A stretch of 64,000 bases of DNA from Antechinus flavipes (GCF_016432865.1 NC_067402.1:299460001-299524000); one strand, 5' to 3'; positions 3,270 to 60,782 are shown, numbered from the stretch's first letter. The notes: generated from the letters alone by a model not told the origin. Made by a program: numbers and translations.

Positions 3270-6200
3270 GATACTTATGATGTATCAGAACTTATGTAGA
3301 ACATAGACAAGGCTTATATAGGATGCATAGACAGTTATGTACTTACTATTGTTAGAAGGAACTTCAAATAGAAGAGATCACTGATGAGGAAGCCACAGTG
3401 TATGTTGTATTTCTCAAGTTTTCCTTACTTCAATCCATCTGTTTACCCATCTTCATGCTTCTCTGAATTCTATATATTTACACCTTCTTATGACACAAAA
3501 GTACATCAGTATGTTCATGTACCCAATTTGTTTAAACATTTTCCAGCTGAAGAGCATTGGTTTTATTTCTTTTGCATCTACCTTTCCCTCCCTCAGTTCT
3601 TTCAATTTCATGCGTTGGGGTGGGGTCTCTGTGTCACAGACTATGGGCATTTGATGCCCTTTTCATAAATTAGAATACCAAATGACTTTTCCAAACAGTT
3701 GGACCAATACAAACCTACATATATTGTATCACTATGTCTCTAAATCTATAGCACCCCGAAAGAATATTTCCAACTTCTGGGGTCATCATAGCCAAATTAA
3801 TGGATGTAAAGTGTAACCCCAGAGTTGAGATTTTTCATTCCTAAAAGCATCTTAATAAAACATTTTCTGCCTGAGCAAATATGGCAAAAAAAACCTATTT
3901 CATCAGTTGCATGAAAGAGCTATTCATTTAGGAATGATGTGCAAGTTTCCTAACTCAGCAAAGATCTAGATTTAGAATTTTCCATGTCTTGCTGCCTCTC
4001 CAAACTACCACTCACAAGCAGAAGGCTTAGTGAAGTCATCTCATTTTTCAGTGCCACTCTTAAACTAAGGACCCAGCAAGAAGTGGCATTGAGGAGTGGG
4101 GTTCATCTTCAAGTCCCTCCTTGGCTGTTCAGATCCATAGGATCTTTAAAGGACGGAGAATTGGCAGAGACCCTAAGCCTAACCTAAATGCACTGAGACC
4201 CAGTTGGTTTAAATTACTTTATCAAGACCACACAGCTGCAGAATCAGAATTTCAACTCATGTCCTGATTCCAAATCTAGTGATCTTTTCATTCCACTGTA
4301 TTGTCTTTGAAGTAGGTGAGCAGATAAGCAGCAATTTTGTAAATTTGATTCAGTTCTATATTCTCTCTGTAAATGAGGTGAAGCCTTTATTTGAAAAACT
4401 TGGTATAAAAAGTTTTTAAGATTACTTTATTGTCTATGGTACTTCTTAGCAAAAGGTAATTTCCCTCTCTTTTTAAATGAGATCTATTTTTGTTTTCGTC
4501 TGGCTCATAATTGTTAAGCTTGTCTTTTTTGCTTCAGCCAAATAGATTTTACCTAGCTAGCCCCTCATTTTAACTCTGTGTCTTTCTGTTTTAAGAATGT
4601 CTTACCCAAAACATGTCGCTGGATTGTGGCTTCTAATCTGTTCTTCCATAGACTTCTGACTTGTTTTATGGATGAGTTCAGCCCCTTAATATTTATAGTT
4701 ATAATTACTATATTTACTTTCATCTCTTTTTTTCTCTCTTTTATAATGAGAGTTAGTTAAGGGTTAAGGAGAACTGGGCATATTTGTAGCCAGCAGGGAA
4801 GCCGTCGGTAATTAGGAAGAGAGAACAGGGATGACAAGCTTTCTGGGGAGAAGGCAGGAGGGGATGGCATGGAGGGTGCATAGAGAAGGGTTGGTCTAGA
4901 CAAGGAGAGGCATCTCTGCATTTGAGAATGGAATCAAGGATGGGAAAGGAGCAGATCATGGCAAGAGGTTGTGAGATGAGGAGGAAGGAAGAGAGAAGAG
5001 GGAATTCATAGCAAGTGTTTTCAGGTTTCTTGACACAGGACAAAGTTGAGGTTTCCACCTGTGATGATGGGAGAAGGGGATTCTTTTGGACACCTGGAGA
5101 GGAGAGAGAACCATAGCAGTATATAGTAGCTAAAAAGTGAAAGCAAAGTGGGTGCCCATCAAGGGGGAAATGTTAGAACCAATGATGGTCAAAGCATGGG
5201 ATGGAATATGATTATACTGTCAAAAAGAGCGGTTCTGAAGACTTCTGAAAAAGGCAGGAAGCCCTAGAGACTGACCCAGAGAATGAGGAACAGAAGCAGG
5301 GAAGTAAGTCAATGAATGTTGACTTCAATAATGCCAGTGCAGAGGCCATTGGACCAAACTTTTTCTCACTGGAACTGTGATTCTTGGTTGGGGAAATGGA
5401 GCCTGTAACTCCTTCCTCTGGACACAGTCTGGGGGACGGCAGGTACAGGAAGGTGAATGTCCTGTCAAAAATGGCTGGATCATTTGGTTGTGAGGAGAAG
5501 GGTGCCTATTGTATTGGGGGATGTAGTGAAAGAAATGTGATAGATAGAAAGCCAAAAGACATTAGAAATGTATATTTTTAAAAATTTAAGCAAAGACAAC
5601 TGGAATTTGGGGCTCTCTGCTCAGGAATTGGGTCTGGATCATCAAAACACCTGGTCCTTGATTTAGGTTGATGGGGCTCAAGGCCAAAAAGTGGTGGGGT
5701 GTGCTTAGTACCCTAAAGGAAGGACCGGACAAATCTTGTCCGGGAGTTCCAGGAAAGAAACCACCCAAAGAGGCTCGGCACAGGCAGGAAAACACCGTGA
5801 AAAAAAGTCTGCCTGAAGTTTAAGGAGATCAGAAAACAGAGAAGATTAAAGTGGGGAGGGACTGCGGACTCAGAGGCAGCCATGGCAGCAAGAAAAAAGG
5901 CGAGGTTGCCCAGCATCATTGTGGGGAAGGATGGAGGGAGGAATGAAATTTGGAGGTGGAAAAAAGAAGGAGGGGAGAGCAGGAGGATTTAAGGGTATAC
6001 AAGTGGGATTTGAAGTAGGGAGAGAATGCAAGTTATTTGAAGGGTTAAAGCCTGGCTTTTTCCCGTGGGCCTCGAGTTCTGAAGACTTTTGTGCGCACTA
6101 TCTTTGATCCAGAAGCACTGGCTCTTGGACGGACTATCAACCTTAGGTTGGAATCCTAGGGGGAAAATTACCTTGGCCCAGTCTACATTGGGGGGCTGGA

Positions 6201-6334
6201 GCCAATAACCCTTGTTGTATATATAGGGCTTCACCAAACTCCCAAGGGTAGGGTTTCCTGAGCTCCAAAAGCATTGCCACACGGGATCCTGAAAGCTCCA
6301 GCAAAGGTAGACTAAGGTTCCCAGGAGGCTCTCG

Positions 6335-6460
6335 TAGTGAGGGGTGGGGCTTCCCAAATTCCTTTGGGGTGGAGCTTCCAAAATGAGGAAAGTTCATCAT
6401 ATCCCAAAGGAGTGAGGGCGTGGTTCCCAGGAGCCTTTGTTGCCTAAGGGCGGAGTTCCT
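6335..6460 (+). promoter_or_regulatory. Putative TATA-less GC/GT-box promoter of Ras-like copy 1
   Basis: Cluster gaggggtggggc / ggggtggag / gggcgtgg / gggcggag at the same position in all five units, about 150-250 bp upstream of a conserved splice donor. CCAAT near 6203. Promoter function is inferred. Confidence 0.5.
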
Positions 6461-6593
6461 CAAATCATCCTCAAGACCTGGAGTTCCCGGTGGTCCCTGC
6501 AGTACGTAGGAGGAGGACCTCTACGTCTCAGTGCTTCTAACTTGTTCCATCCTTGCCAACTAGACCTGAAGGCGACCTGACAATTCTGAAAAG

Positions 6594-7382
6594 GTATGTA
6601 GAGACCGGCTGATCAGTTCATGTTAGCGCTGTCTCAGTTAACAGCAATGGGATGGGTGGCAATAGACCCTAAGTTAGTGCCATCTTGGACTGCATCAATG
6701 CGGGAGATATTGGTTCAGCTCGGCTCCTCGTGGGGCCGGATTAGTTCGGGCAGTGCCGCTGGGTCGCCTCCCCTCCCACCACTTGAGCTTCCCGAACCCT
6801 TACACTTTGGGTTGTATCATTGGCGGTTCAGATGGGGAAGCCCAGTTTGCAGCCAAGCCGGCCAAAGACTCTCGGCTGTTTGATGCAGGAGCTGCAGACC
6901 TGGCAGCCGCCCAAGCCGAACCCTTTGGGTTGCATTACTATGGAGGCGCATGGCCTGTAGAAATAGCACTATTCTTGCCTCCTAAGACCCTTCCAAATTG
7001 ACTCCGGGGTCTTCTGGGTCCCGGGGTGTGAGAAGGGCGGGAGTGAATCAGAGAATGTCTTGGAGAAGCTGGACAGAATGGGAGGGCCTGGAGCCCACGT
7101 GCTCTAATGAGTTTGGAATTGGTCAGAAGAACCAGGAGATTGAGATTCCAAGTATCTGAACTTCTGTTACTGGGAGGAGGATTGAACCTTGTTCAGGTGG
7201 GCCCCAGAGTGCTGAAAGGGGATGGGGAAAAGGATTGGCAAAGAAGCCCACTGAGGCTGGAGGATAAAGGAAAGTCTTCCTCCCAAGAGATGACCTCCTG
7301 TGTAATGGGCTGACTTCTTGCAGCCCTTCCTTGCAGCCTGGAAAGTAGACTAGAGACCAGAGACCACTTGAGCCCTTCCCAG
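6594..7382 (+). other. Predicted 5' UTR intron of copy 1
   Basis: Donor AAG|GTATGT at 6594 and acceptor cccttcccAG|ttctcATG at 7382. Both motifs are conserved in all five units while the sequence between them has many indels. Confidence 0.55.
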
Positions 7383-7387
7383 TTCTC

Positions 7388-8014
7388 ATGGCTTCTTGTG
7401 TCCATACCTCCATAGGTGATCCTGAGAGACACAGAACCAAGATGTATAAGTTGGTGGTGATGGGCACCTGTTATGTGGGCAAGAGTGCACTGACCATGCA
7501 GTTTATTAAGAATCATTTTGTGACCGAGTATGACCCTACAATGCAAGATACCTACTGTAAGCAAACAGTAGTGGATGAAAAGCCGTGCCAGTTGCGCATA
7601 GTGGATACTGCAGGCACTGAAGAGTATTACCCTCTGAGGAATCATTCCATGCTCTGGGGAGGGGGCTTCCTCTTGGTCTATGCAGTGAATGACCTCCACT
7701 CTTTTGAGAATGTGAATGTTTTCTGGGACATTCTGCAGAGGCTCAAGGGCACCAACCCTATACCCATGGTGTTGGTGGCCAACAAAGTTGATGTGACCGA
7801 CAGGCTGGTGGACCCCACACAGGGCCAGGAGGTGGCCAGGAGCTTAGGGGTCCCTTATGTGGAGACATCAGCCAAGACTGGACAAGGTGTGGAGCAAGCC
7901 TTCCATGAGCTAGTGGGTGAAATTCGTAGGATCCGAGCTGAGGAGGAGCTCAAGAGACTCTCTAATACTGAGGAGAAGGAGGCCTGTGGGTGCAAATATT
8001 GCACAATCCAGTGA
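7388..8014 (+). CDS. Ras-like small GTPase copy 1 (208 aa; HRAS/ERAS-like, single coding exon, CaaX CTIQ)
   Basis: G1 GTCYVGKS, G2 YDPTMQDTY, G3 DTAGT, G4 NKVD, G5 ETSAK; C-terminus CGCKYCTIQ; 18-aa N-terminal extension. Collinear with HRAS without indels in the G domain. Confidence 0.93.
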   Translation: MASCVHTSIGDPERHRTKMYKLVVMGTCYVGKSALTMQFIKNHFVTEYDPTMQDTYCKQTVVDEKPCQLRIVDTAGTEEYYPLRNHSMLWGGGFLLVYAVNDLHSFENVNVFWDILQRLKGTNPIPMVLVANKVDVTDRLVDPTQGQEVARSLGVPYVETSAKTGQGVEQAFHELVGEIRRIRAEEELKRLSNTEEKEACGCKYCTIQ

Positions 8015-8346
8015 GCAGGTACACCCTTACCCTGATCCTGCCCCCAATTCCCCTCTCACCTGACCACGAAAACCTCCAAATTCCTTAGCCACTCCCCAGC
8101 CTTCAAGATCTTCATCTGCCTTTTGCCTGTTCTTCACTGCCAAGTCCTTGGGGATCTTATTGGGATTTCTCCAGGACCCTCTTGGAGGGTTAGGATACCC
8201 AGTTAAAAGTATCAAGAATTCTAAAGCTACCTGTGTGGCTTTGGGCAGGGGGGAACCTTGAATAGGAAGAACAATTCATTTTAAAGGGACTTCATTCACA
8301 CCTGGATTCAAAGTTGATTATTTTTATTTTTCTAGGATCTCTTATA

Positions 8347-8352
8347 AATAAA
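8347..8352 (+). terminator. Poly(A) signal of copy 1
   Basis: AATAAA followed by GT-rich gttgttggtttgtaagtgtgtttc; position conserved in all units. Confidence 0.65.
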
Positions 8353-8859
8353 GTTGTTGGTTTGTAAGTGTGTTTCTGGTAGTTTCTCCTGGGTTGTATG
8401 CTTGGGGTAGAAATCACATGAGGGCATTATAGCCTAGTGGAGAGAAAGCTGGGTTTGGGAGTGAGGAAGGCATGGGTGTTTTAGTTGTGAGACCTTGGGC
8501 TTCTGTTTTCTCACCAGTAAGAAATGGGGGAGAAGGGGAGAGTTATTCTAGACTCTCAGGTCCCTTTTAACTTTACCACTGGGATAGGTCTAAGTCTATG
8601 AAGCTCAGGTTAATGAGATGACAGTGATCCCTAGAAATAGTCTTATGTATCATCTGGCCATCATGTATCATAATATTTATCTCTGAATCTCTCATCTCTA
8701 TAGTAACTAATCATATCTCTTATTGTCATCTATCATTTATTGGAGATCAGTTCTATACTATCTATTAGCTCTCATCTTTTTATATAATTTTCATTTCTGT
8801 CTCTCCACACTCTTCCCCCACCTCATTTTTAATTTAACATAATCAAAAATACTCAAATT

Positions 8860-10900
8860 GCATTTCATAATGTTCTCTAATTCTTATTTGTCCAAAATTT
8901 CCTCCCTTCTCCAAATATCTAACAATGTAGACTATGCTTTGCTCTTTTAATTTGCCCATAATACCATCCTTTATGTCTAAATAACGAACCCATTTTGACC
9001 TTATGTTGGTGTAGGGTGTTTGAAGTTGGTCAAAGCCTAAGTTCTGCCTTAGTATTTTCCAATTCTCCTAGCAATTTTTCGTCAGATAACGAGCTTATCC
9101 CAGAAATGGGCATCTTTGGGTTTAATCAAATACTTGATCACTTAATCAGTCATTGACCATTGTGTCTTATATACTTAATCTATTCCAATTATTCTCTACT
9201 CTTAGTACACCAAATAATTCTGAAGACTGCCTCTTAATAAAGATGGGATTAGGTGTGGGATGGCTAGTCCACCTTCCTTTTTAGCATCCATTTTACAAGA
9301 TTTTGGATTCCCAAGTTTTTCCCTCCTTCCTTCCTCTCCCCTCTTCGGAAGAAGGGATGTAGTTTGATCTAGTTTATATGTGACCTATCATGTAAGACAA
9401 GATTCAACATCAGTCACAGTGTGAAACATCAAAAGGAAAAAGTGAAAAAAGAAAAAAAAGTGCTTCCATCTGCATCAGAGTCTGTCAGTTCCTTATCTGG
9501 ATATGGCTAGCATTTTCTTTCATGAGTTCTTTGCACTTGTCTAAGATCATTTTGTGGCTGAGAAGAGCAGAGTTTCTCATAGTTGATCATCATACAATGT
9601 TGCTGATGCTGTGCACAGTGTTTTCCTGGTTCTTCTCATTTCACTTTGTATCAGTTTGTACAAGTCTTTCCAGGTTTTTCTGAAATCTGCCTGTTCATTT
9701 CTTAGTGCACAATAATATTCCTTTATATTCCTATACCACAACTTATTCAGCCATTCCCCAATCGATGGGCTTCCCCTTAATTTCCAATATTTTGCCACCC
9801 CACAAAGGACTGATATAAATATTTTTGCATATCATATATATTTATGTATTTCTGTCCTTTCCTTTTTGTGTGATCTCTTGGGGATACAGACCTATCAGTG
9901 GTATTTCTGAGTCAAAGCGTACGCACAATTTTGTTGTCCTTTGGGCATATTTCCAAGTAACTCTGAGAATGGTTGGATCAGTTCAGGACTCCAACAATAC
10001 ATTAGGTGTTTCAATTTCCCCCATCATTTATCACTTTTTTGTATATCATATTGGGCCAATCTGATAGGTGTGAAGTGATATCTCAGAGTTGTTTTAATTT
10101 ATATTTAACTTCTTTTAAAACACTTCTTCATATGTCTAGAGATTGCTTTGACAGTTTCATTTGACAGCTACCTGCTCATATTCTTTGATTGGAGAATGAT
10201 TTTTATTTGGCTCATATTTCACCAAAGACACTTTTTTTGGAGGTACTTATTGTAAAGATTGTTTTCTGCTTTCTGCTTTCCTTCTAGTCTTAGTATCATT
10301 TGGTTTGGTTTGTGTAAAAGCTTTTCAAATTTAATTTAATCAAGATGATCTATTTTGCGTTTTGTAGTGTTCTCTCTATTTGATCAAAAATATTTCCTCT
10401 TCCCCTAAGTTTGATAGACTATTTTTTGCTCTTCTAATTTGCTTATCATCCCCTTTTATCTCTAAATCACGTAGCTCTTCAGCCTTATCTTGGTATAAAT
10501 TAAGACATACTGCTCTATACATACTTTGTGTCCAATGCCCCTCCCCACTCACCCTCCCCAGTTTTCCCAGTTTTGTCAAATAGTGAGTTCTTATCCCAGA
10601 AGAGTTTGGGTTTATCAAACAGTAGATTACTATAGTCTTTAGCTATTATACCTTATGTACCTAATTTCTTTCACTGATTCACTATTTCTTGGCCAGTACT
10701 AGATGGTTTTGATAGTTACTGCTTTATAATATAGTTTGAGATGTGATATTGCTAGACTACCTTCCTTTGTTATTTTGTCCCCTTTATTTTCCTTGATATT
10801 CTTAACCTTTTTTCTTCCAGATGAATTTTTTAAAAAAACTTTTCTTAGATATTTTTGATAGTTTGATGGACATGGCACTGAATAAGTAAATCAAATAAAA
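8860..10900 (-). mobile_element. L1 ORF2/3' fragments shared by array units
   Basis: Antisense ORF 9577-9798 (KYWKLRGSPSIGEWLNKLWY) matches the L1 ORF2 C-terminus. Homologous blocks at about 26920-28040 and 61240-63740. Confidence 0.7.
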
Positions 10901-13289
10901 TATATTTAAAATAAAAAATTAACATTATATATAATGGAGATAAATACATTTTTTCCTATAAATTCAGGGTGCAGCAGTGATGTTCATTGTCACCACTTCT
11001 GTTCGACATGGTATGAGAAATGTTGACTGGCACTAAGATGAAAAGAAATAACTATAATATGAGAATAATATAGGAATATTATATAGGAATCCAAGAATAT
11101 TCACAGTTATTACCTTTGCAGATGATATATTGATACCTAAAGAACTTAGATTCAAGTAAAAATTAATTGAAACAAAAATATCCACACAAATCATTGTCAT
11201 TATAAAAACCTCAGTAGGAAGATAGAAATGTCACTTACAATTACTATAAAATATATAAAGTACTTTGGAATTTCCCTACCAAGATTCCCTACCAAAAATT
11301 ATAAAAAATACAAATGCAAGTAACTGCTTATTTATACAACTAAATAAATAAATACAACTGCTCATGAAATTAAATAAAACAGTTTCTGGCAATGTGTACT
11401 TCAATGCAGAGTACAGTATTCATATTAACATTTTGTATTAGATACTAGTAGCGTCCCATAGTATCAATTGGGGGAGAGGGGTTATTACTGCTCTTGTTAG
11501 TTATTCCCATTACTCTGGGATTTGTGGGAGCCAATGAAACAAGAGTTGATCTGCATGGATCATTAGAGGGACTTCTCACTCACTGGTATAGGAGTTCACT
11601 TTACTACGAAAATCATGGATCTAGTTCTTGTACACATGCACACCCCCATTCTGAATGTTTTGCAATAATTATTTAAAATAATTCCTTGTAAAATTATTTA
11701 GCAAACACCAATTATTAACTTCTCTGGGCAAGACCCTTGGCTAGGCACAGTAGGGAGACATAAAAATGGATGAATCATACATTAGATTTACAGGAAACTT
11801 AGAGACTAAGAGAGAGAGTTTAAGTTGAGAAACTCTTGGCTATGGCTTCACACACAGCATAAGATTCTGTGAGGATCCCTCTCTGTCTCCTACGTGGTTC
11901 TCTGCCATCTTGTAGACCAGCGATCACTGAAAGGTACAGGGCCCCAAAAGCTTAATTTTGAACTGAACACTGGAAAAAGAGGATGGGATTTGGAATCAGT
12001 ATACCTGCATATAAGTATAATAGGGAGCTGTGTGTGTATTATCATCTGGCTCAGATTTTGAGCCATGGGATAATGGACTATGAGAATAGTAAGGAAGCTG
12101 ACTATATCAGGTGTGTAAAAGGGTGATATGGGAGCAAGGTTAGATGGCCTGTGAGTATATAATGTTTTTATTTCAGGTCCAGCTGCAACTACACAGAACA
12201 ATTTTTTTTTCCTAGAAGAGTTTCATTCGGTTGGCTTCTGTTATGCAAAAAAGAATTCCACAAGAAATTTAAAACAAAATAATAAACCCCAAAACTCTAG
12301 GGACTTTTAAAGCGATATTTGCTTTCAATTTAGATTATAATCTAACATTGAATAGTAGGCTAAGTTGCAATATGTAAAAAGGTTTATTTTATGCTGCTTG
12401 GAAAATAAATATGCATTAATAAAAAAATTATATTATTGGACTAGAAACAATAGTCAAGAACTATATCACAAGACTGCCTTTAAAACACATGATCAGATTA
12501 TACTGTACACACATGTAATTCTTTAGGACCGGTAAGTTCTTTCACACAACTTTTGATCATATTTTGAATTCTTTACACCATGCCAAGTTTTTAAGTAGCA
12601 AAATACAGATCATTCTTGTTTGACACACAATGCAATATTTCCTTTTACTTTAATTCTGGATATTTTAAAGTATTTTCTATAATTACATTATATGTATGCC
12701 TGTTCATCTTGGTGTCCGGTTCACTGGTCAAGGGCTTGGTTAGATTTATACTGTAGTATGTAGGAAATGGGTAGGAAATAGTGTGAATGTAAAATTGGAG
12801 ATCATGTGCTACAGAGGGTGGGAATTCTGAAGAAGCATATTACAACAAGGTGTTAACTCAGTGGAATTGATGAGATTGTGGTTCTTTAGTACACATATAT
12901 TTAGTACTTAGTATAGTGATGTAATGGTTCTGTAGTAAACACATTCAGTATACTGTAATGATGTAATTATAATAAGGTATTTAAGGGCTGAGAGGACTAG
13001 AAATGGGACATTCCATTTTTGACCAGCCTTGTGATGGCGTCCTGCCTTCATCACTTCTTCGCTAAGACCAAGGCTCAGGCTGATCTCAAAGTCCTCCAGA
13101 AAGCTAGCCTGACCATTACATTTTGGCACTGAAACGGGGCCATAAGGACCTATACTCAGTTTGAGGGATGAGATTTCAAGATCAGTGGAAAAGTCCCTGT
13201 GACCAGGAAATAGGGTGAGTAAACTAATCACTTTCATTTTTCAATTAAAATGGGGCAAAAAAAAAAAAAAGAGAGAGCCTTTCCCACCC

Positions 13290-15755
13290 TCCCAGGAAGA
13301 GAAGCCCAGCCCAAGGGCCCCAGGCAAAAAAAACAGATGGGCATGGTGGCAGCAGAGGTTACACCCAGAGAGTCTTTAGAAGTTCAGTACCCAGACATAA
13401 TTAATCCACCAAGAAGGAACCTGATGGGGGAAAGAAGTTACAATTGGGGAGAATAGAGTTGTATACAGTTGGGACTAATGAGATACCCCCTAGCGAGGTG
13501 AAATCTGTTCCTGTCTGGCCTTTGCCTCCAGCCTCATGGTGGCCCCTCTGCCTTCATCCTTTGCCTCCAGGCACAGTCAACTTGGCCATTTCACCTCCTG
13601 AGATGTAAAAAACAGTGTCCATCCATACACTGATATGGGAAACTGGAGAATGTGACACGAATATCCCAGTCACTAATGAAGGTAGGCAATGTGTGACTTA
13701 TCACCCAGGAGAAGTAGTAGCATCAGGTTTACTGATACAGAGTTCTAATAAGCACTCTGATGATAGTCGCCCAGATTCTGACTCCAGGCCAAAAAATCCA
13801 GGAATATACTGGACAGCAGCTGGGACAGCTGACCGACCTATGCTCACTATATAAATGGCACTCCATTAGAAGGATTGGTAGACACAGGCGTAGATCGTAC
13901 AGTCATTAGAGGTGCCAACTGGCCCAATCATTGGCCAAAGATTAAGGCAGACACATACATGTCTGACGTAGGAGGATCAATAGTGGCTGAAGTTAGTGCT
14001 ACCCCTTTGAGATGGACTTTTGAAGGTGAAACAGAAGTTTTTACTCTTTTTACAGTTGAAAAATCTCCATCAATCTGTGGGGAAGAGACATTTTACAACA
14101 ATTAGGGTTAAAAATGAGTACCTCGGTTTTTTAGGCAGGGCTGCTGTTGAAGTTCTTTTCCTATCCAATGGAAAACTGATGCACCAGTGGGGATAGAACA
14201 GTGGCCCTTAGGTAGCGATAAAATCCAGGCCTTATTAGATATAGTACAGGAGCAACTTGACCAATGACACTTAACAACCTTCTCTAAGTCCTTGGAATTC
14301 CCCAGTATTGGTTGTAAGAAAGAAATCTGGAAAATGGAGGATGTTGACTGATTTAAGAAAGGTAAATGAACATATGGAAACTATGGGGACTCTTCAGCCT
14401 GGACTTCCATCTCCTACTCAATTGCCTAGAAATGGCCTCTTTGGGTTATCGACATTAAGGATTGTTTCTATTCTATCCCTCTCGATAAAGAGGATACAAA
14501 AAGATTTGCCTTTTTAATACCTAGTGATAACTTAGCTGAGCCTTATAAAAGATATGAATAGATAGTTTCGCCACAGGAAATGAAAAATAGCCCTACTATG
14601 TGTCAAATATATGTTGCTACTGCTCTTACTCCATTAAGAAAAACATTTCCAAAAGTTATGTTACTACATTACATGGATGATATATTGGGATGTGCACCTG
14701 AGGAGCAAATATTAGAAGCATGTCTACAAAAGACCATAGAAACATTGAAGAACTACAAATTGTACATAATTCCAGAAAAAATTCAAAGACATGCTCCTTT
14801 TCAATATTTAGGATATGAAGAACACCCTAAGGTGCTTACAGTACAAAAACTGTCCTTAAGAACAGAGAAGTTGAACACCTTAAATGACTTTCAGAAATAG
14901 ATAGGAGATAGCCAATGGATGCGTCCAGTGTTAGGTTTGACTACCTATCAGTTACAACTATTACATGACATTTTAAGGGGAGACAATGCTTTAAACTCAC
15001 CACGCCAGGTTACAAAAGAAGCTCAAGAGGCTTTGAGAGAAGTTGAACTGGCTTTATCCAATGTGGTTGAAAAGAGTCACTCAAAACCCTTGGAAATATC
15101 AGTTTTTGTGACACAAGAGGCACCCACAGCAGTCCTTCATCAAGGAGACAGTGTGATAGAGTGGGTGAACCTCCCGGCACAACCAGAATGAAGCCTTACT
15201 CCTTACCCAGTGCTTGTGGCTAGAATTTTATTAAAGGCCATTAAGCGAGCAGTACAATTATCTGGGACAAGACCTGATAAGATATACACCTTTTACATCA
15301 ATACACAAATTAATGTGTGCTGTGAGACCATCCCAGAGTGGCAAATTTTATTGGCCATAGGTCCAAATTTTACACATGCGTCTCCATTAAAGATAACCAT
15401 ACTTTTACATAATTGGCGATGGATTCTTAAAGAGAAGGTTTCTAAAGTTTGTCTTAAAGGACCAACTATCTTTACAGATGCATCCAAACATAATATTTGT
15501 TCTGTATACTCTCGTGACTTAACTATAAAGAGACTAGTCAGAACTCCTTTTCAATCCACTCAGCAGAATGAGTTGTATGCAATCATTCTAGCTCTTACTT
15601 ATTATTCAGGAGACATAAATATAATATCTGATTTGGCCTATTCAGTAGGTGTGGTGCAAAGAATTGCCACAGCCCAGATAAAATTTGTAGCTTCCAATAT
15701 ATATCAGCTCTTTAAGGAACTTCAAGAGCAAGTGAGAAAGCATCCAGGTCAGATC
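13290..15755 (+). mobile_element. Decayed class II (betaretrovirus-like) ERV fragment: gag end, dUTPase-like remnant, protease, RT, RNase H
   Basis: Protease LVDTGVD (13875-); [23 protein letters not shown] and LHYMDDIL; RNase H IFTDASK...QQNELYAII...IISD. Multiple stops and frameshifts; truncated before integrase. Confidence 0.92.
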
Positions 15756-47747: not shown

Positions 47748-48629
47748 AGTTGTTGTTTTGTTTATACGTGTGTTTCTGGTAGTTTCTCATGCGTTGATAT
47801 GCTTGGGGTATCTAAGGTACCTGAGGGCAGTATGGCCTAGTGGAGAGAGAGAGCTGGGTTTGGGAGTGAGGCAGGCAGGGTGTTTTAGCTGTGGGACTTT
47901 GGTCTTCACTTTTTTCACCAGTTAGATGTGGGGGAGGAGAAGGGGATCGTTGGTCTAGATTCTCAGGTTCCTCTTAACTCTATCACTGGAGTGGGTCTAA
48001 GTATCATCTGGCCATCATGTACCATAATATTTATGTCTGAATCTGTAATCTCTATATTACCTAATCATCTCTATTAAGTCATCTACCATTTATTAGAGAT
48101 CAATTCTATATCATCTATTATCTCAGATCTTTTTATGTAGTTGTCATTTCTTCCTCAACACTTTCCCCCCACCTCATTTTTAACAATCAAAAATACTCAT
48201 TTTGCAGTTCATAATGTTCTCTAATTCTTCTTTGTCCAAAATTTCCTTCTTCTCCGAAGATGTGACAAGATAAATTATTACCTTGCTAGTTTGCCTATAA
48301 TATTTCCCTTTATGTCTAAATTGTGAACCCATTTTGACTTTATGTTGTCGTAGGGTGTTAAATGTCAGTCAATGCCTAGGTTCTGCCGTAGTATTTTCCA
48401 ATTTTCCTAGCAATTTTTGTCAAATAGAGAGCTCTTGTCCCAAAAATTGGAGTCTTTTTAGGTTTAATTAAATACTCGATTGTTATATTTACTGACTACT
48501 GTGTCTTGTATACTATGTATATATATATATGTATGTATATAAAAGTATAATATATATACACTTGTATACTTTTATACTTAACCTATCCTACTAGTCAGTA
48601 CCCCAAATGATTTTGATGACTGCCTCTTT

Positions 48630-49500: not shown

Positions 49501-50759
49501 AAACATTCGTTTTACAAGGTTTTGAATTCCCAAGTTTTCTCCCTCCTTCCTTCCTCTCCCCTCTTCTGAAGAGGAGATGCAGTTTGATCTTGTGTAAGGC
49601 ACAATTCAACATTAGTCACAGTGTGAAAGAGGAACATGATCCAAAGGAAATAATGAAAAAAGAAAAAACAATGTTTCCATCTGCATTCAGAGTCCGTCAG
49701 TTCTGTATTTTTCAAAATTATCAAGCGAGTACAAGCACTTAGAAATACTAAGATATTTGGTTACAAAAACCACCCCATTGGGGCTGGCTCTTCTGCTGAG
49801 CGGCTGTCCAGACCAGGCCTCCTTCCTGGGGCGATGTGACCTTAGAGGCCTGTAATCCCCCCTGGTGGGGCTGACTGGTACTGAGAGAGGAGAGAGAGTC
49901 AGGGAGCAAGTGATAGATCCCTCCGGGAGAGAGTCTAACTCGGAAGACTTCAGGAAATAATGGTCTGCGCTGCCTTCTGCCCTGGAAGTACTCCATGCAT
50001 GAACTTGCACATATTTGCGAAATTATTTGAAGTAGATTATGAACAGAGAATTCTTTATGGACACGTTAAATATGTTTACTTTTAAATAAATAAAAGAATA
50101 GCTTCTGCAATTGGAAAAGTGCTTATTCTTTTTCCCTTTCATCTCTGCCCTTGAATGGGGCGCGGAAGCGACAGTGATGGGGAAAGGAGGGAAGGGAAAT
50201 AGGCATTGATTGGGGACTCACTGTGTGCCGGGTGTAGAAGCGCAGGGTCCAAATACAAACACTGTAACCGTCTTTAAAAGACTCTTCACGATTTCTGGGA
50301 AGAGAGACAGGGGGTGGGGGCTAGAAGGAAGTCGTGGGGAAGGCGGTGGGGCTCTGGGCATAACGGGCTGTCCCCGCCCCCTCCCCCCAGCCTGGGAGAG
50401 AACTCCTCCCGATCCTCAGCCAGACCCTCGTGGGAAGGAACCGAGGGAAACAAGTCACACAGAGAGCGAGGTAGCAGCAGGACTAGAACTCGGCTCTTTT
50501 TCTTTTTTAAGGTAAAAATATTAGGGTTTGATCCACATTCAGTCTCCGTCGCTCTCTCTCCGGATGCCGACGGCACTTTCCGTTACAAGTTTATCCGAAC
50601 TGCCCTGAATCTCCCCATTGCTGAAAATGGCCAAGTCCGCCACGCCTGATACAATTGGGGTTAAGTGACTTGCCCGGGGTCACTCCGCTGGGACGAGTTA
50701 AGTGTCCGAGGCCAGATTTGAACTCGGGAGCTCCTGACTTCGGGGCTGGGGCTCTAACC

Positions 50760-51945
50760 ACTGGGCCGCCCACCTGCTCCCCCCCCCCCATAATCTTGCA
50801 GCTGCGGGCGGGGCTCTCCTGGTTCTCCCTGCCCTCAGCGCGAGTCCCAAGTCTCCGCAGGCTTCTCTGCGATCAGCCTGCTCAGCGTTTCTCCTAGACT
50901 CCTAATACTCTGTCCTGTCCCGCTCACGCGCCGCCGCTGGGCCGCCGAGCCCGGGATGGCGCCGCGCGGGCGCCCGCAGAGCTTCTTTTGCCCGAGGGCG
51001 GCGGGAGGCGGGATTGGCCGAGAGCTCCCGGCCCTTTCTCCCCATTTCAAAGAGCCTCTTTCTGACTCTTCCCCTGCAACGGCGCCGCTCAGTGGCCGCG
51101 CTTTGCATTGCGTCCTCACTTTTCCGGGGTTAGATTCCTTCCTTCCCTCGGGCCGTCGGGGAGGGGGAGGGGCCGCGGCGGCGCAGGCTCAGAGGGGCGG
51201 CCGCGGCGGCGCAGGCTCAGAGGGGCGGCCGCGGCGGCGCAGGCTCAGAGGGGCGGCCGCGGCGGCGCAGGCTCAGAGGGGCGGCCGCGGCGGCGGCGCA
51301 GGCTCAGAGGGGCGGCCGCGGCGGCGCAGGCTCAGAGGGGCGGCCGCGGCGGCGCAGGCTCAGAGGGGCGGCCGCGGCGGCGCAGGCTCAGAGGGGCGGC
51401 CGCGGCGGCGCAGGCTCAGAGGGGCGGCCGCGGCGGCGCAGGCTCAGAGGGGCGGCCGCGGCGGCGCAGGCTCAGAGGGGCGGCCGCGGCGGCGGCGCAG
51501 GCTCAGAGGGGCGGCCGCGGCGGCGCAGGCTCAGAGGGGCGGCCGCGGCGGCGCAGGCTCAGAGGGGCGGCCGCGGCGGCGCAGGCTCAGAGGGGCGGCC
51601 GCGGCGGCGCAGGCTCAGAGGGGCGGCCGCGGCGGCGCAGGCTCAGAGGGGCGGCCGCGGCGGCGCAGGCTCAGAGGGGCGGCCGCGGCGGCGCAGGCTC
51701 AGAGGGGCGGCCGCGGCGGCGCAGGCTCAGAGGGGCGGCCGCGGCGGCGCAGGCTCAGAGGGGCGGCCGCGGCTCCTTGTAGGACTCAGGCAGAGCGAGC
51801 GGATGGGGAGCCGCAAGCCTCCGCTTCGTTCGCGACCACTCCTGTCCTCCTCCAGCCTCTCTTTTGTCTGCCCCCGCCTCCCCTCCCCTGCCTGTTTCTG
51901 TGTAATCCTTTCTCCGTACAAATGGAGAATCTCGGTTTGAAAGGG
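50760..51945. promoter_or_regulatory. CpG-island-like segment containing the minisatellite
   Basis: Very high CpG density relative to the AT-rich flanks. The associated gene, if any, is not identified. Confidence 0.55.
51170..51772 (+). repeat. GC-rich minisatellite, 28-bp unit gcggcggcgcaggctcagaggggcggcc, about 21 copies
   Basis: Near-perfect tandem units; two 31-bp variants with an extra GGC (about 51288 and 51483). One NotI site per unit. Confidence 0.95.
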
Positions 51946-53159
51946 GCTCCAGCACCACGGGGGAAGAACGTCTCCCTCCCCCAAGCTTCCTTCCCTTGTC
52001 AGTTGTCGGGTCCCACTCTCCTCCTTCAGCTCACTAACGCCGGGCTCCTCTCCCCGTTCCCGGCGCCCCGGAGGTCCCAAGGTCGCTCTCTGCCCTCTGC
52101 CCTCTCTCCTCTGACTCTGACCCTGCCCCCCTCCTTCTCTCCTACCTGGGCTGTTATTACACCTGCTGGGGGGTGGGGGGCACAGTGGTCTGTCTCTCTG
52201 AAGTCTCCCTCCTCCCCAGGTCACCTCTGACCTTTCTGAACCTCAGGTCTGAGCCTCCCACCGCCCTGTTCAATCAACCGCACAGACTGTTCCCTTCAGG
52301 AGAAAATATCCGATAAGGATCCCCCTCACTAAGGGCCAGACACTGCGCCAGTGCCTTATAAATACTGGCTTTTCTGATCCTCACAACCACCCTAGGAGGT
52401 ACTTGCTTTTTATTATTCCCATTTTCCACATGAGGAAACTGAGGCAAACAGCAAAAGTGACTCGCTCAGGATCACCGCAGAGGTCGGATCTGCATTCTAG
52501 TCTTCCCGAGTCCGGGCTCAACAAAAGGCTCTTTGCTCGGACTTAGCAGCAAAATGACAGGCGGGACTATCAAGTCGCATGGCCAGGCGCTCTGGGGCAA
52601 TTGCCAGTATCTTTATCTTCCTTCAGAAAGAAACGGGGACTGGTTTGAGCTGAGCCATGGACGGTGGGTGAGAAACGCTTGCCCTGCTCTGCAAGACCCC
52701 CTGGACTTGGGCTATATGTCCAGAAGACCACCTCGTTGGGTTTACAAAAAGTTCCCAGTATTGTTTAATAACATAGAGCTGGAAAACTACAACTTTGTTC
52801 CTGTTTGGGGGGGGGGGTCGTCTCTTTGGCTTTTAAAGCTCCTTATGACCTAGCTCCTCTCTCACTTTTCAGTCTTATCTCAGCCTTCTTCCCCCCCCCC
52901 AACTCCGTAATTCTCTGATGCAGTGAAAATGGCCCCTTGCTGTTCCTGTACATCACACTCTGCCTCCAGGCTCCTGGCCTTCTGTAGTAGCTGTGCCCTG
53001 TGGCCAGAATGCCCTCCCTCCCATACCCCCTCTGTTTCTCTGGCTCCTTCAAGTTGTAGGGGAGTCCGACCTCCTGCAAGAAGCCTTTCCTATCCTCCTC
53101 AACCTAAAGCTTCTCTTCTGAAATCCCAGCTAATTCATCCCGTTTTCTCATGCCGTCAA

Positions 53160-55959: not shown

Positions 55960-56965
55960 TTAAGTAACTTTTTATTGATAGAACCAATGCCAGGGTAATT
56001 TTTTACAGCATTATCCCTTGCATTCACTTCTATTCTGATCCCCCCGCCCCACCGCCTCTCCTAGATGGCAAGCAGTCCTTTACATGTTGAATAGGTTACA
56101 GTATATCCTAGATAATATGTGTGCAGAACTGAACAGTTTTCTTGTTGCACAGGGAGAATTGAATTCAGAAGGTAGAAATAACCCAGGAAGAAAAACAAAA
56201 ATGCAAGCAGTTTATATTCATTTCCCAGTGTTCTTTCTTTGGGTGTAGTTGCTTCTGTCCATCTTTGATCAATTAAAGCTCTCTTTATTAAAGAGATCCA
56301 CTTCCATCAGAATACAGCCTCAAACAGTATCGTTGTTGAGGTATATAATGATCTCCTGGTTCTACTCGTTTCACTTATCATCAGTTCATGTAAATCTCGC
56401 AGTCCTCTCTGTATTCATCCTGCTGGTCATTCCTTACAGAACAATAATATTCCATAACATTCATGTACAGCAATTTACTCAACCATTCTCCAATGGATGG
56501 GCATCCTTTCATTTTCCAGCTTCTAGCCACTACAAACAGGGCTGCCACAAACATTTTGGCACATACAGGTCCCTTTCCCTTCTTTAGTATCTCTTTGACA
56601 TATAAGCCCCGTAGAGACACTGCTGGATCAAAGGGTATACACAGTTTGATAACTTTTTGAGCATAGTTCCAAATCGCTCTCCAGAATGGCTGGATGTGTT
56701 CACAATTCCACCAACAATGTATCAGTGTCCCTGTTTTCCCACATCCCCTCCAACATTCCACATTATCTTTCCCTGTCACTCTAGCCAATATGACAGGTGT
56801 GTAGTGGTATCTCAGAGTTGTTTTAATTTGCATTTCTCTGATTAGTAATGACTTGGAGCATCTTTTCATATGGCTAGAAATAGTTTCAATTTCTTCATCT
56901 GAGAACTGTCTGTTTATATCCTTTGACCATTTATCAATTGGAGAATAACTTGATTTCTTATAACT
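55960..56965 (-). mobile_element. L1 3' end (ORF2 C-terminal cysteine-rich region plus 3' UTR)
   Basis: Antisense ORF 56381-57001 encodes IREMQIKTTLRYHYTP...CWRGCGKTGTLIHCWW, a hallmark of L1 ORF2. Confidence 0.92.
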
Positions 56966-58107
56966 AAATAGCTTTGTGCTCATGCAGCTATATACCTGCA
57001 CAAGGCAAAGTGAATGTAAAGGAGTTAGAGTGAATGATCTCTATGTTTTATGAGCCTTAAAGTTCTATACAAATGTCTGTTGTTATCGTTGTTGCCGTCA
57101 TTGTCGTCATTACCCAATCCAAAATTCTGTGAAATGACATGATGGATCTCACAGCTCTTTCAGACCCTCAAAGTAATAAAATAACCGTGAGGGTATCACT
57201 TGCACATTTTTATTCTCCAGGTTTGTTTTCCAATCTAAAGCAAAGGCCAAACAAGTCTTGCTCTGGAGTTCTGAGGAAGGACCCACTCAAAGAGGTTTGG
57301 CACGGGCCAGGAAAACAACGTGAAACAAGTCTGCCTGAAGTTTAAGGAGATCGGAAAACAAGCTGAAAGTGGGGAGGGACTGCGGACTCGCAGGCGGCTG
57401 TGGCTGCAAGGAAAAGGCGAGGTTGCCCAGAGTCATTCTGGGGAAGGATGGAGGGAACAATGAAATTTGGAGGTGCAAACAGAAAGAGGAGTGACCATGA
57501 GGAGTTCCGGGAATGAGTGGGGTTTAAAGTGCGGATTAGGCAAAGGAAAGCCAGAGTGACAAAGCCTGCTTTTTTCCCCTTGGGCCTGCAGGACGGAGGA
57601 CTTTAGCACGCACTATCTTTTGGTGCAGAAGCACTGGCTCTTGGACCTTCCTGCTTACCTCAGAATCTCAGGGGCAGAATTACCCTGGCCCCAGGCTACA
57701 TCGTGGGGCTGGGGCCAATAACGCTTGTGGTACTTGTAGGGCTTCCCCGAACTCCTAAGGGTGGGGTGTCCTGAGCTCCCAAAACACGGCCACGCGGGAT
57801 GCTCAAAGCTCGGTCAAGGGTAGGCTAGCGTTCCCTGAGGTGCTTGCAGTGAGGGGTGGGGCTCCCCAAATCCTTTGGGGGTGGAGCTTTCAAAATGAAG
57901 TAAATTACTCCCATCCCGAAAGAGTGGGCGTGTGGTTCCGGGGAGTCTTTGTTGCATAGGGGCGGGGTTCTCCAAATCACCTGGGGTTCTCACAAGCCCT
58001 GGCAGTACGCAGGAGGGGGGCCTCTACTTCTCTGCTTCTGAGGAGTTCCGCCCTTAAAGACTAGATCTGAATGCGAACTGAAGAGGTAACTTTACAGTTC
58101 CGAAAGG

Positions 58108-58783
58108 GTATGTAGAGGCCAGCTCTCAGTTAACAGCAATGGGGTGGGTGGCAAGTAGACCCCAAGTTAGTGCCATCTTGGACTGCATTAATGCGGGAGG
58201 CATTGATCGAGCTCGGCTCCTCATGGGGCCGGATTAGTGCGGGCAGTGCCGCTGGGCTCGCCTCCCCTGTCCCCAGCTTAGCTACCCGAGCCCACACACT
58301 TTAGGTTGTATCATTGCAGGTTCAGATGGGGGAGCCCAGTTTGCAGCCAAGCCAGCCAGAGACTCTCGGCACCTTCGATGCAGGAGCTGCAGACCCTGCA
58401 GCTGCCCAAGCCCAACCCATTTGGGCTACGTTACTGTGGAGGCGCATGGCTTGCAGACATAGTTAGCACTATTCTTGCCTCCTAAGATCCTTCCGAATTG
58501 ACCCCGGGGTCTTCTGGGTCCCGGGGTTTGAGAAGGGCCCCAGTAAATAAGAGAGTTGTCCTGGAGAGGTCAGCCAGAATAGAAGGGCCTGGAGCCCACA
58601 TGTTCTAATGGGTTTGGAATTGGCCAGAAGAGCCAGGGGATTCAGAGATTTCCCGTATCTAAAGTTCTGTCACTGAGGCTGGAGGCAGGAGGAAAGTTTT
58701 CCTTCTGGAAGGTGACCTCCTGTGTAATGGGCTGATTTCTTGCAGCCTGTAAAGTGATTAGATTCCACTTAAGCCCTTTTCAG
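58108..58783 (+). other. Predicted 5' UTR intron of copy 5
   Basis: AGG|GTATGT donor; cccttttcAG|ttctcATG acceptor. Confidence 0.55.
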
Positions 58784-58788
58784 TTCTC

Positions 58789-59415
58789 ATGGCTTCTTGT
58801 GCCCATACCTCCATAGGTGATCCAGACAGAAGCAGAACCAAGATGTATAAGTTGGTGGTGATGGGTGCCTGTTGTGTGGGCAAGACTGCACTGACCATTC
58901 AGTTTACTGAGAATCATTTTGTGACTGAGTATGACCCCACCATCCAAGATTCCTACCTTATGCACTCAGTGGTAGATGAAGAGCCGTGCCATCTGGACAT
59001 CGTGGATACCACGGGCAATGAACAGTTTTACCCTCTGAGGAACCAGAACGCACGCTGGGGAGAGGGCTTCCTCTTGGTCTATGCAGTGAATGACCCCCAC
59101 TCTTTTCAGAATGTGAATTTCTTTTGGCACTATCTGCGGAGAGTCAAGGGCACTGACCGTCTACCCGTGGTGTTGGTGGCCAACAAAGTCGACTTGTCCG
59201 ACAGACTAGTGGACCCCACATTGGGCCAGGAGGTGGCCAGGAGATTTGGAGTCCCTTATGTGGAGACATCAGCCAAGACTGAACATGGTGTGGAGCAAGC
59301 CTTCCATGAGCTGGTTCGTGAAATTCGGAGGCTGCGAGCTGAGGAGGAGCTCAAGAGTCACCCCAATACTGAGCAGAGGGAGGCCTGTAGGTGCAAGTGT
59401 TGCACAATCCAGTGA
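58789..59415 (+). CDS. Ras-like GTPase copy 5 (208 aa, CaaX CTIQ)
   Basis: G1 GACCVGKT, G2 YDPTIQDSY, G3 DTTGN, NKVD, ETSAK; C-terminus CRCKCCTIQ. Confidence 0.93.
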   Translation: MASCAHTSIGDPDRSRTKMYKLVVMGACCVGKTALTIQFTENHFVTEYDPTIQDSYLMHSVVDEEPCHLDIVDTTGNEQFYPLRNQNARWGEGFLLVYAVNDPHSFQNVNFFWHYLRRVKGTDRLPVVLVANKVDLSDRLVDPTLGQEVARRFGVPYVETSAKTEHGVEQAFHELVREIRRLRAEEELKSHPNTEQREACRCKCCTIQ

Positions 59416-60159
59416 GCAGGTACACTCTTACCCTGATCCTGCCCCCTAATTCCCCTCTCACCTGGCCTAGAATACCTCCAAAGCCTCCAGTCACTCCCTA
59501 TCTTTCAAGACTTTCATCTGGACCCTTCCTTCTGCTGCTCTTCACTGCCAAGCCCTTTTGGGCATTTTCAGGATTTCTCCAGGAGCCTCTTGGAGGGACC
59601 TGTCTGCATTTCTCTGTAAAGAGAGTTGTGTTGGATTTTTGCTTTTGTTTCCCCTTTTGAGCAGGAATGACTACCTCACTACCTGGGTATCTCAATAGGC
59701 AAGAAAAGACTCCATTCCTTCCCCGGTGCTCAGCCTCCCCTGGCCAGATGCCCCAGAGACAGCCAGCTCCTGGGAGGCTTTCTGTCTAGTCTGGCCCTAA
59801 TCTGCTGCAGCTTCCTCAGCCTTCCTGGAGCTGTGTGTGGGATTTTCTTTATTGGGCTTTCCCCTGCTCCCCCAACTGGGACTCTGCCTCTGGAGACAAG
59901 GGCACAAGTGATTCTCCCTCATGATTCTCCCTCCTGCTCCTGGACTTGGTGTATCTGCTGTCTGGAGCCAGGACACCACCTGTTGTTGGCCCAGAAGACC
60001 TTGTTTGTGGTGTTGGTGAGAAGCCCTGCTCCGAACTGGTCCCCATTCAGTGACCCTCAAGGTCAGACTTGGGGGATATGTGGTTTTTTTTTTTTTTTTG
60101 GTTACTCACATGGATTGTGTGTACTTGTTCTCAATTTGCATATCATCTGGAGCACTCTT

Positions 60160-60325
60160 TTTTTTTTTTTTGTTTGTTTTCTTGTTTTTTTTTTCCCCTT
60201 TCTTTCTTTTTTTGCTGAGGCAATTGGGGTTAAGTGGCTTGCCCAGGATGTCTCATACAAGATTTGACATTGGTCTTCCTGCATTGGGGGCTGGTGCTCT
60301 AGCTGCTGTGCCATCTACTTGCCTC
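60160..60325 (-). mobile_element. SINE in 3' UTR of copy 5
   Basis: T-tail followed by antisense SINE; target-site duplication tctggagcact on both sides. Confidence 0.8.
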
Positions 60326-60776
60326 TGGAGCACTTTCAATAGCAGTGAGGGGTTTGGGTGGAATGGGGCTGCCTCCTACCAGCATAATGCCTTTAGGCTT
60401 AAGTGCCATTAAAATTATAATTTCTGTTTTAGCAGCCAGATAAAACCCTTTAGACGTTGCAAGTTGCATTACTTTAATTGTCTCCCAGAGAAATGGAGTG
60501 GAGGGGCTTGGCTGTAAATGTTCTGAGCCAATACCTCACAGCTTTAGATCAGGTGAGAGTCTGCTTAGGAGCCTTCTGACAGGGATATCTTTGTACCTCA
60601 GGATTTATGGTGAAAAGGGCAGTGGGTGATTCTCCTGTTTCAGTTAAAATCATTAAGGATTTTAAAGTTAACTGTTTGGGGGAGGGATTGAGTAGGAAGA
60701 GGAATTCATTTTAAAGAGACTTCCTTCACACTTGGATTCAAAGTCTTTTGTTTTTCTTTTTCTGGGATTTCTTACA

Positions 60777-60782
60777 AATAAA
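60777..60782 (+). terminator. Poly(A) signal of copy 5
   Basis: AATAAA plus GT-rich element. Confidence 0.6.

Follow-up and report, generated by a model that had tools for sequence, protein, structure and literature searches.

Marsupial gonad Ras (MgRas) genes were described by Petrohilos et al. (Mol Biol Evol, January 2026; preprint August 2025; PMC12866920) as single-exon genes that form a marsupial-only clade of the Ras subfamily, with three subclades (A, B, and C), and that are expressed almost exclusively in the gonads. According to that paper, the yellow-footed antechinus, Antechinus flavipes, possesses 23 MgRas genes (17 in clade A, 2 in clade B, and 4 in clade C); the ancestral Cluster 1 adjoins DLC1/TRMT9B, and Cluster 2 is found only in dasyurids, lies on chromosome 5 near the chromosome end, and contains a large expansion of Clade A. 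Here, we analyzed a 64-kb stretch of A. flavipes DNA (termed the window; positions 299,460,001 to 299,524,000 of the 300,479,852 bp of CM028221.1, assembly GCA_016432865.2), which carries five Ras-like genes, c1 to c5, that are very probably members of this family. Our literature search found no other description of the family than the paper and its preprint, and the array, the family, the antechinus copy number, the two clusters, and the gonad bias have been public knowledge since January 2026. The main text of the paper is silent on positions 12, 13, 59, and 61 and on the CAAX box, and it explicitly leaves tests of the ratio of nonsynonymous to synonymous substitution rates (dN/dS, or omega) to future work (PMC12866920). 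The details added here are the universal loss of Gln61 together with a substitution at position 12 or 13, the retention of lipid anchors, the gene signals shared by the units, an overall omega below 1, and a class of diversifying sites.

H-, K-, and N-Ras are the nearest sequences and structures to the five copies (47 to 58% identity, E values of about 1e-56, template modeling [TM] scores of about 0.9). Their genes are multi-exon in the coding region, single-copy, and nearly invariant, whereas the copies have one coding exon, are arranged in tandem, and vary. The copies share the effector-loop core DPTI-D-Y and the lipid-anchor logic with H- and N-Ras, but the catalytic combination of Gly12, Gly13, and Gln61 is not found in them. 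Positions 12, 13, 59, and 61 are those altered in tumor and retroviral Ras proteins; in the copies, such "mutant" residues are germline encoded, variable, and combined with a fast-evolving switch II and helix 3-4 surface. ERAS resembles MgRas in having one coding exon, an N-terminal extension, no canonical Gly12, constitutive activity (shown for ERAS and predicted for MgRas), and expression restricted to the germline or early development. ERAS is single-copy, whereas MgRas, with an extension of 18 residues, is amplified to 14 to 117 copies in two marsupial orders. Human ERAS also keeps a Gln at the equivalent of position 61, which the MgRas members examined do not have. Finally, Rnd proteins and RhoH are constitutively GTP bound, have lost the equivalents of Gly12 and Gln61, and are controlled via their expression level rather than by cycling between GTPase-activating proteins (GAPs) and guanine nucleotide exchange factors. 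Unlike the copies, which are tandem genes of the Ras branch, these proteins are members of the Rho branch whose genes show no tandem amplification.

Identity and surroundings of the five genes

An open reading frame (ORF) listing and a tblastn search of the 64 kb revealed exactly five Ras-like coding regions, all on the + strand and all matching the Pfam Ras domain (PF00071) with E values of about 1e-46. This agrees with the preliminary description of the window, which had reported five paralogous Ras ORFs in the same orientation; its estimate that copies 1 and 5 differ at about 54 of 208 residues was exactly 54 on recount. Pairwise protein identity among the five ranges from 72.9 to 78.0% over 177 shared codons. 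The coding regions are the following:

7388-8014, + strand: coding exon of c1, 208 amino acids (aa)
24653-25375, + strand: coding region of c2, 240-aa ORF
35911-36525, + strand: coding exon of c3, 204 aa
45793-46418, + strand: c4 including the upstream ATG; main ORF 45846-46418, 190 aa
58789-59415, + strand: coding exon of c5, 208 aa

The closest proteins are automatic NCBI models ("GTPase NRas-like," "ras-like protein," and "KRas-like") from Antechinus flavipes, Sminthopsis crassicaudata, and Sarcophilus harrisii, located on homologous chromosomes, and remoter relatives were found in possum, wombat, glider, koala, bilby, monito del monte, and opossum. We then built a tree of 59 proteins, in which 50 marsupial sequences were set against classical and M/R-Ras outgroups (a limited outgroup sampling, with no ERAS sequence). 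The marsupial sequences were monophyletic with respect to classical Ras (support 100/100), and c1 to c5 grouped with 24 other sequences in a clade restricted to dasyurids (29 sequences in total; 100/98). Within it, a Tasmanian devil sequence was the partner of c5 (100/100) and another that of c2 (100/97). The sister of the dasyurid-only clade comprises dasyurid genes of 233 to 234 aa, followed by genes from opossum, wombat, glider, and possum, a shape that Clade A would be expected to show.

The location fits Cluster 2, as the window covers 299.46 to 299.52 of 300.48 Mb, with the chromosome end ~1 Mb away (the chromosome 5 label being taken from the order of accessions), and the devil orthologue of c5 lies 0.22 Mb from an end of LR735558.1. 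Seven further antechinus members were located around the window on CM028221.1:

299.340 Mb, - strand: Clade A
299.346 Mb, + strand: other clade
299.384 Mb, + strand: Clade A
299.416 Mb, - strand: Clade A
299.439 Mb, - strand: other clade
299.444 Mb, + strand: Clade A
299.569 Mb, + strand: Clade A

Since members are found on both sides and on mixed strands, c1 to c5 represent the middle of a mixed-orientation array of at least 230 kb, and the earlier caution that the window may not hold the whole array was justified. Species, chromosome-end cluster, single coding exon, marsupial Ras clade, and Clade A placement are all shared with MgRas (PMC12866920). We conclude with high confidence that c1 to c5 are neighboring MgRas members of Clade A in the dasyurid-only Cluster 2, in an array that spans at least 230 kb close to the end of CM028221.1; this confidence is given to the explanation as a whole, namely, identity, origin, gene structure, predicted GTP-locked state, and mixed selection. 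The earlier proposal that this Ras subfamily is specific to one lineage, amplified, and encoded by one coding exon holds, and the published expression is mostly in gonads (PMC12866920). The novelty that the proposal implied is not supported, because the genes had already been annotated, as NCBI models (XP_051819199.1 for c2) and under the name MgRas, and prior annotation as a known family was what the preliminary description itself had named as counting against it.

The competing identity with the most in its favor is that the copies are marsupial orthologues of eutherian ERAS, expanded in tandem. It would account for the single coding exon, the N-terminal extension, the substituted position 12, and the predicted always-active state, all of which recall the description of ERAS as an atypical, constitutively active Ras with a unique N-terminal extension (PMC8834437), and the MgRas paper did not find ERAS in the devil; yet, in the tree of that same paper, ERAS forms a eutherian-only clade and MgRas a separate, marsupial-only one (PMC12866920). 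Our own searches by fold and by sequence point the same way, as the best Swiss-Prot matches are K/N/H-Ras (47 to 52% identity), with ERAS missing from the top 30. The ancestral MgRas cluster lies beside DLC1/TRMT9B (PMC12866920). The ERAS neighborhood is a different, X-linked one. We therefore regard ERAS orthology as improbable and keep the identification with MgRas.

Other MgRas-related sequences were noted in the surroundings. A second small antechinus Ras group lies at 294.81 to 294.84 Mb of CM028221.1. Ras genes of another MgRas clade, at L005:4675-5235 (- strand) and L007:3879-4448 (- strand), are interspersed with the Clade A genes of the array and point the opposite way; they encode 186 and 189 aa and are 55 to 56% identical to c1. 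A lone remnant at L008:1039-1206, 9 kb upstream of P0013, corresponds to the last 56 codons of an MgRas gene only.

Catalytic positions, lipid anchors, and selection

We analyzed the proteins in an alignment of 49 marsupial members with nine nonmarsupial Ras, M-Ras, and R-Ras2 sequences, using H-Ras numbering. The nucleotide-binding motifs are well preserved. The G1 P-loop GxxxxGK[S/T] is present in all five copies, as are Thr35 of G2, NKxD of G4, and SAK of G5, which are also invariant across 28 cluster 2 sequences, and F28 and D57 are likewise retained. The G3 motif DxxG reads DTAG or DTTG in c1, c2, c3, and c5 and is disrupted in c4 (DTTD, G60D). As for the catalytic positions, Gln61 is found in none of the 49 marsupial members, which instead carry T, N, I, V, S, G, A, L, M, D, or R; a residue other than glycine occupies position 12 or 13 in 49/49; and most Clade A members have Thr59. 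The nine nonmarsupial sequences all read DTAGQEE, and eight have Gly at both 12 and 13, the sole exception being a bat "HRas-like" model (GTGNVGKS). The residues in the window are as follows:

c1: C and Y at 12 and 13, A at 59, T at 61
c2: G and S at 12 and 13, T at 59, T at 61
c3: C and C at 12 and 13, T at 59, T at 61
c4: G and S at 12 and 13, T at 59, I at 61
c5: C and C at 12 and 13, T at 59, N at 61

Changes at such positions of Ras abolish GAP-stimulated hydrolysis and depress intrinsic hydrolysis. The loss of Gln61 and the substitutions at 12/13, combined with intact nucleotide-binding motifs, predict a GTP-locked Ras, so that the MgRas copies are predicted to be constitutively GTP bound. 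An AlphaFold model showed a confident Ras fold (predicted local distance difference test score of 86.6), with TM scores of 0.88 to 0.94 to K/N/H-Ras. Furthermore, c1, c3, c4, and c5 end with C-T-I-Q after further cysteines (...C(C)TIQ), a cysteine-rich end that predicts farnesylation and palmitoylation as in H-Ras and, with them, membrane anchorage. We propose that the copies would keep guanine-nucleotide binding, would have lost GTP hydrolysis and the response to GAPs, and would be membrane anchored where the CAAX box is kept.

Outside the window, a 186-aa member (P0021; L009:10559-10624, at about 294.81 Mb of CM028221.1) terminates at a TAA directly after the G domain, yet the frame continues undamaged through the next 21 codons, among them a cysteine-rich CAAX box. 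The same end point was seen in devil P0016, P0026, and P0027 and in antechinus P0022. Stop-codon readthrough was considered for the preserved CAAX codons of P0021 and set aside, as the TAA is in an ordinary context.

We then turned to dN/dS, since the MgRas paper recommends such tests as future work. Pairwise omega among the five copies is 0.39 to 0.60, and a codon model on seven sequences gave a maximum likelihood omega of 0.60, with omega = 1 rejected (twice the log-likelihood difference [2dlnL], 13.98; p = 1.8e-4). For c5 and its devil orthologue, dN is 0.046 and dS is 0.147, corresponding to an omega of 0.31 (bootstrap interval, 0.15 to 0.64). No copy has an indel in the G domain (531 bp), compared with 14.7 gap openings per kb in pairwise comparisons of the upstream flank, and in a simulation of neutral substitution at the flank rate, each copy had a 5 to 18% chance of its frame staying open. 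Neutral evolution with loss of the ORFs, which the preliminary description had named as part of an outcome that would speak against its proposal, was thus not observed for the array as a whole.

Site models were applied to 168 G-domain codons from each of 14 coding sequences of Clade A (the five window copies, seven genes from elsewhere in the antechinus, and two devil genes) with an in-house codon-likelihood code that reproduces the M0 likelihood of IQ-TREE exactly (-3306.554; omega, 0.69). M2a fitted much better than M1a (2dlnL, 39.1; p = 3e-9), with 48% of codons at an omega of 0.11, 36% at 1, and 16% at 2.9. The signal persisted when the two halves of the gene were analyzed separately, each on a tree of its own (p = 0.004 and 4.5e-5), and when the three damaged copies were dropped (11 intact sequences; p = 3e-5). 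Sites with a posterior above 0.9 are 13, 24, 27, 41, 43, 66, 73, 99, 107, 108, 129, and 136. Variability across the 28 cluster 2 proteins peaks in switch II (mean entropy, 1.22 versus 0.75 overall), and G10, G15, K16, F28, D57, N116, K117, D119, S145, A146, and K147 are invariant. Interface analysis has placed positions 37, 41, and 64 among those tied to effector selectivity, position 41 being the site of the ERAS tryptophan that favors PI3K over RAF (PMC5147862). Region-wise Nei-Gojobori dN/dS values for the P-loop, switch I, switch II, and helix 3 gave none above 1, in samples too small to be informative. Overall, selection is mixed: about half of the codons are strongly constrained and about one sixth are diversifying, the latter all lying outside the nucleotide-binding motifs and often falling in switch II, the interswitch strand, or helices 3-4.

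Duplicated units, gene signals, and state of the copies

Self-BLAST of the window delineated five duplicated units of 6 to 8 kb, each consisting of about 1.1 to 1.7 kb of upstream sequence, the coding exon, and at least 3 kb of downstream sequence. Units are 75 to 85% identical to one another, and gene starts are 9.9 to 17.3 kb apart.

5713-11775, + strand: unit 1 (upstream region, c1, and downstream flank), 75-84% identical to the other four
23519-29534, + strand: unit 2
31573-38528, + strand: unit 3, with an extra 2.9-kb upstream block common only to unit 4
40826-48514, + strand: unit 4
56965-63930, + strand: unit 5

The copies arose by tandem DNA-level duplication of a 6- to 8-kb unit that included flanks and introns. 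The devil locus of XP_031794388.1 (LR735558.1) contains three copies, namely, an intact c5 orthologue (208 codons, 90% protein identity), a frameshifted copy, and another intact copy. The frameshifted copy, at L002:27471-28092, is located between the two intact ones, so individual copies are being lost in the devil. Duplication predates the split between antechinus and Tasmanian devil, which is shown for c2 and c5 and probably holds for all copies. As for the founder, the parental coding introns are absent, as in a retrogene, the ORF being continuous over the whole G domain, and K-, H-, and N-Ras score almost equally as its parent. The family is older than the marsupial radiation, so a poly(A) remnant or target-site duplications are not expected to survive; a retrogene origin of the MgRas founder is plausible but unproven.

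The following signals were identified by motif search and alignment (a slash marks a splice point in this section):

6448 (6448-6458), 23719, 34953, 44908, and 57960, + strand: GC-box GGGCGG[A/G]GTT, by motif search and flank alignment
6594-7323, 23876-24595, 35105-35868, 45064-45749, and 58108-58745, + strand: putative 5' untranslated region (5'UTR) introns of c1 to c5, donor and acceptor kept in all five
8347-8352 (c1), 26373 (c2), 37696 (c3), and 60777 (c5), + strand: AATAAA with a GU-rich downstream element, by alignment
59420-59664, + strand: putative 3'UTR intron of c5, from GCAG/GTAC to TTTGAGCAG/, with homologous sites in all five units

The GC-box, donor, and branch-point-plus-acceptor motifs each occur exactly five times in 64 kb, once per unit and at a homologous place. 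The GC-box sits within a run of similar G-rich boxes, and the donor G/GTATGTAG follows it by about 135 to 150 nt in all five units. The acceptor, 638 to 764 nt after the donor, consists of a branch-point-like CTGAY and TTCTTGCAG/, the combined branch-point-plus-acceptor motif being CTGAYTTCTTGCAG/; in c1, the putative intron runs from G/GTATGTAG to CTGACTTCTTGCAG/. The start of the 18-codon N-terminal extension, CTCATGGCT, is located 57 to 64 nt after the acceptor (measured in c1 and c2), and four of the copies, like the two intact devil copies, keep the extension (MASC.HTSIGDP) in frame, which supports its translation. The MYKL start of the G domain and the CAAX-plus-stop sequence ACAATCCAGTGA are each found once per unit, five times in 64 kb, and the coding region of each copy is one uninterrupted ORF of 190 to 240 codons. 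The preliminary description had attributed a homologous GC-box, a donor/acceptor pair, and a poly(A) signal to every copy: the first three motifs are present in 5/5 units, but AATAAA is present in 4/5, c4 having the variant AAGTAAA around 47741.

Four nucleotides past the stop codon, all five genes have a further donor, GCAG/GTAC (8015-8020, 25282-25287, 36526-36531, 46419-46424, and 59416-59421), and a strong acceptor, a pyrimidine tract followed by TTTGAGCAG/, lies about 130 to 250 nt downstream of it. The NCBI model of c2, XP_051819199.1, splices precisely this pair (25285/25286 to 25419/25420), the frameshift of c2 making the intron coding there; the MgRas copies of the window therefore probably have a 3'UTR intron as well. 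The upstream regions are GC rich (52 to 61%), and no CpG-island promoter was found at any of the five genes, where observed/expected CpG is mostly below 0.6. As judged from these signals, each unit would be a self-contained gene with a GC-box promoter, a short noncoding exon 1, an intron of ~0.7 kb, and a single coding exon, followed by a 3'UTR with an optional post-stop intron and an AATAAA poly(A) end.

The copies are in different states. Three are intact and equal to public proteins: c1 (P0001; P-loop GTCYVGKS, switch II DTAGTEE), c3 (P0009; GTCCVGKT and DTTGTQV), and c5 (P0006; GACCVGKT and DTTGNEQ), all ending in CTIQ. In addition, c1 lacks about 0.85 to 1 kb of the 3'UTR common to c2 to c5 (at window positions 8189-8200), leaving a 3'UTR of ~0.33 kb versus 1.0 to 1.4 kb. 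The G domain of c2 is intact, and an indel around 25255-25262, just before the CAAX codons, leaves these codons (ending at 25281) recognizable and out of frame; the product (212 aa in the NCBI model, named "ras-like protein," or 240 aa if unspliced) is predicted to have no lipid anchor and would be soluble. In c4, a 1-bp deletion in the N-terminal extension puts the ATG at 45793 out of frame, where it opens a 23-codon upstream ORF overlapping the MYKL start of the main ORF. The 190-codon frame of c4 and its CAAX box are intact; it carries G60D in DxxG and Y64H, and no protein identical to it was found in the public protein collection. The G60D change, the broken extension, and the weakened poly(A) signal make c4 the likeliest copy to be decaying.

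Several other elements were observed between the genes. The 2.9-kb block upstream of c3 and c4 only (31573-34476 and 40826-43726; 83.7% identical) has no ORF with a Pfam match, and its restriction to these units suggests that they were duplicated together as a longer unit. A 1.2-kb block upstream of c2 and c5 (19590-20804 and 51948-53140) is 94.7% identical, compared with about 80% for the rest of the units, and could be a recent gene conversion, a young repeat, or a constrained element. The sole CpG-island-like stretch of the window (50200-52100; GC up to 86%, CpG observed/expected of about 1) contains a 28-bp minisatellite at 51171-51773 (21 copies, 97% matching); this region is present only upstream of c5, in unit 5, the homologous block upstream of c2 being without it. 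Between c1 and c2 lies a retrovirus-like pol fragment (14600-15779, + strand); the reverse-transcriptase motif YMDD occurs near 14670, and the ORF at 15210-15779 matches Pfam RNase H (E value, 1.6e-6). Upstream of unit 5, a 206-codon ORF (56381-57001, - strand) resembles the C-terminal part of LINE-1 ORF2 by eye and has no Pfam match. An Rfam scan of the whole window gave no match. A co-amplified homeobox (VENTX) retrocopy was considered and rejected, as the six frames of the window contain no homeodomain signature and the long intergenic ORFs searched for it gave no Pfam match.

Weighing the explanation and its meaning

Several points weigh against the explanation given here. The GTP-locked state is predicted from residues alone, and signals in the DNA are the basis for the predicted exon 1, the two introns, and translation from the upstream ATG. 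Gonad expression was seen for only 4 of the 23 antechinus MgRas genes (PMC12866920), which may or may not include c1 to c5. Both c2 and c4 carry lesions, overall omega is high (0.6 to 0.7), and the coding divergence (K) of 0.160 is close to the upstream-flank K of 0.168, which means that much of the protein is only weakly constrained. In the site models, relative branch lengths were fixed and posteriors came from naive empirical Bayes; moreover, such tests can be inflated where tandem paralogues undergo gene conversion.

Some of these points would be expected if the array were a graveyard of neutrally decaying Ras retrocopies, its ORFs being leftovers and its gene models annotation artifacts. 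The high omega, a coding divergence about equal to that of the flank, the frameshift of c2 before its CAAX box, the several lesions of c4, the frameshifted devil copy, and expression in 4/23 genes (PMC12866920) would all fit, but decay should not produce the rejection of omega = 1 (p = 1.8e-4), nor an omega of 0.31 between c5 and a devil orthologue when both 208-codon frames and CAAX boxes are intact. It is equally at odds with a G domain free of indels next to flanks with about 15 gap openings per kb, with ~48% of codons at an omega of 0.11 and nucleotide-binding motifs invariant in 28 cluster members, and with promoter, splice, and poly(A) motifs conserved across units (apart from the AAGTAAA hexamer variant of c4). 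We consider neutral decay of the array highly improbable. An assembly artifact, in which haplotype or repeat misassembly falsely duplicated one gene in this subtelomeric, repeat-rich location, has a negligible probability and is already refuted by the divergence between copies (13 to 16%, about 15%, in nucleotides, with many flank indels and different transposon insertions) and by their distinct devil and dunnart orthologues, so that the earlier claim of true paralogs stands.

Returning to the MgRas identification, we propose that the family would be a set of Ras switches that are always on, whose partner surfaces have diversified, and that act in the gonads, where most of the published expression was seen (PMC12866920). 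A more far-reaching suggestion, which we make tentatively and which may well prove wrong, is that MgRas proteins, including c1, c3, and c5, are germline-encoded, membrane-anchored, GTP-locked, and GAP-insensitive Ras proteins that constitute a marsupial counterpart of ERAS of independent origin, that their effector surfaces are diversifying under selection as in reproductive-conflict genes, and that their de-repression alone would be oncogenic. If this were true, ectopic de-repression would deliver an oncogenic Ras signal without any mutation, MgRas being "preactivated," and would offer a more direct route to the high prevalence of cancer in dasyurids than the mutation-target argument of the MgRas paper (PMC12866920).

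These genes represent a mammalian lineage with dozens of germline Ras genes that bear oncogenic-type residues at positions 12, 13, 59, and 61 and that still hold open frames, lipid anchors, and nucleotide-binding motifs under selection. The questions raised by the MgRas paper, namely, the role of MgRas, the selection acting on it, and its link to dasyurid cancer, become direct experiments. MgRas also supplies a set of naturally occurring Ras variants whose switch II and effector surfaces have diversified.

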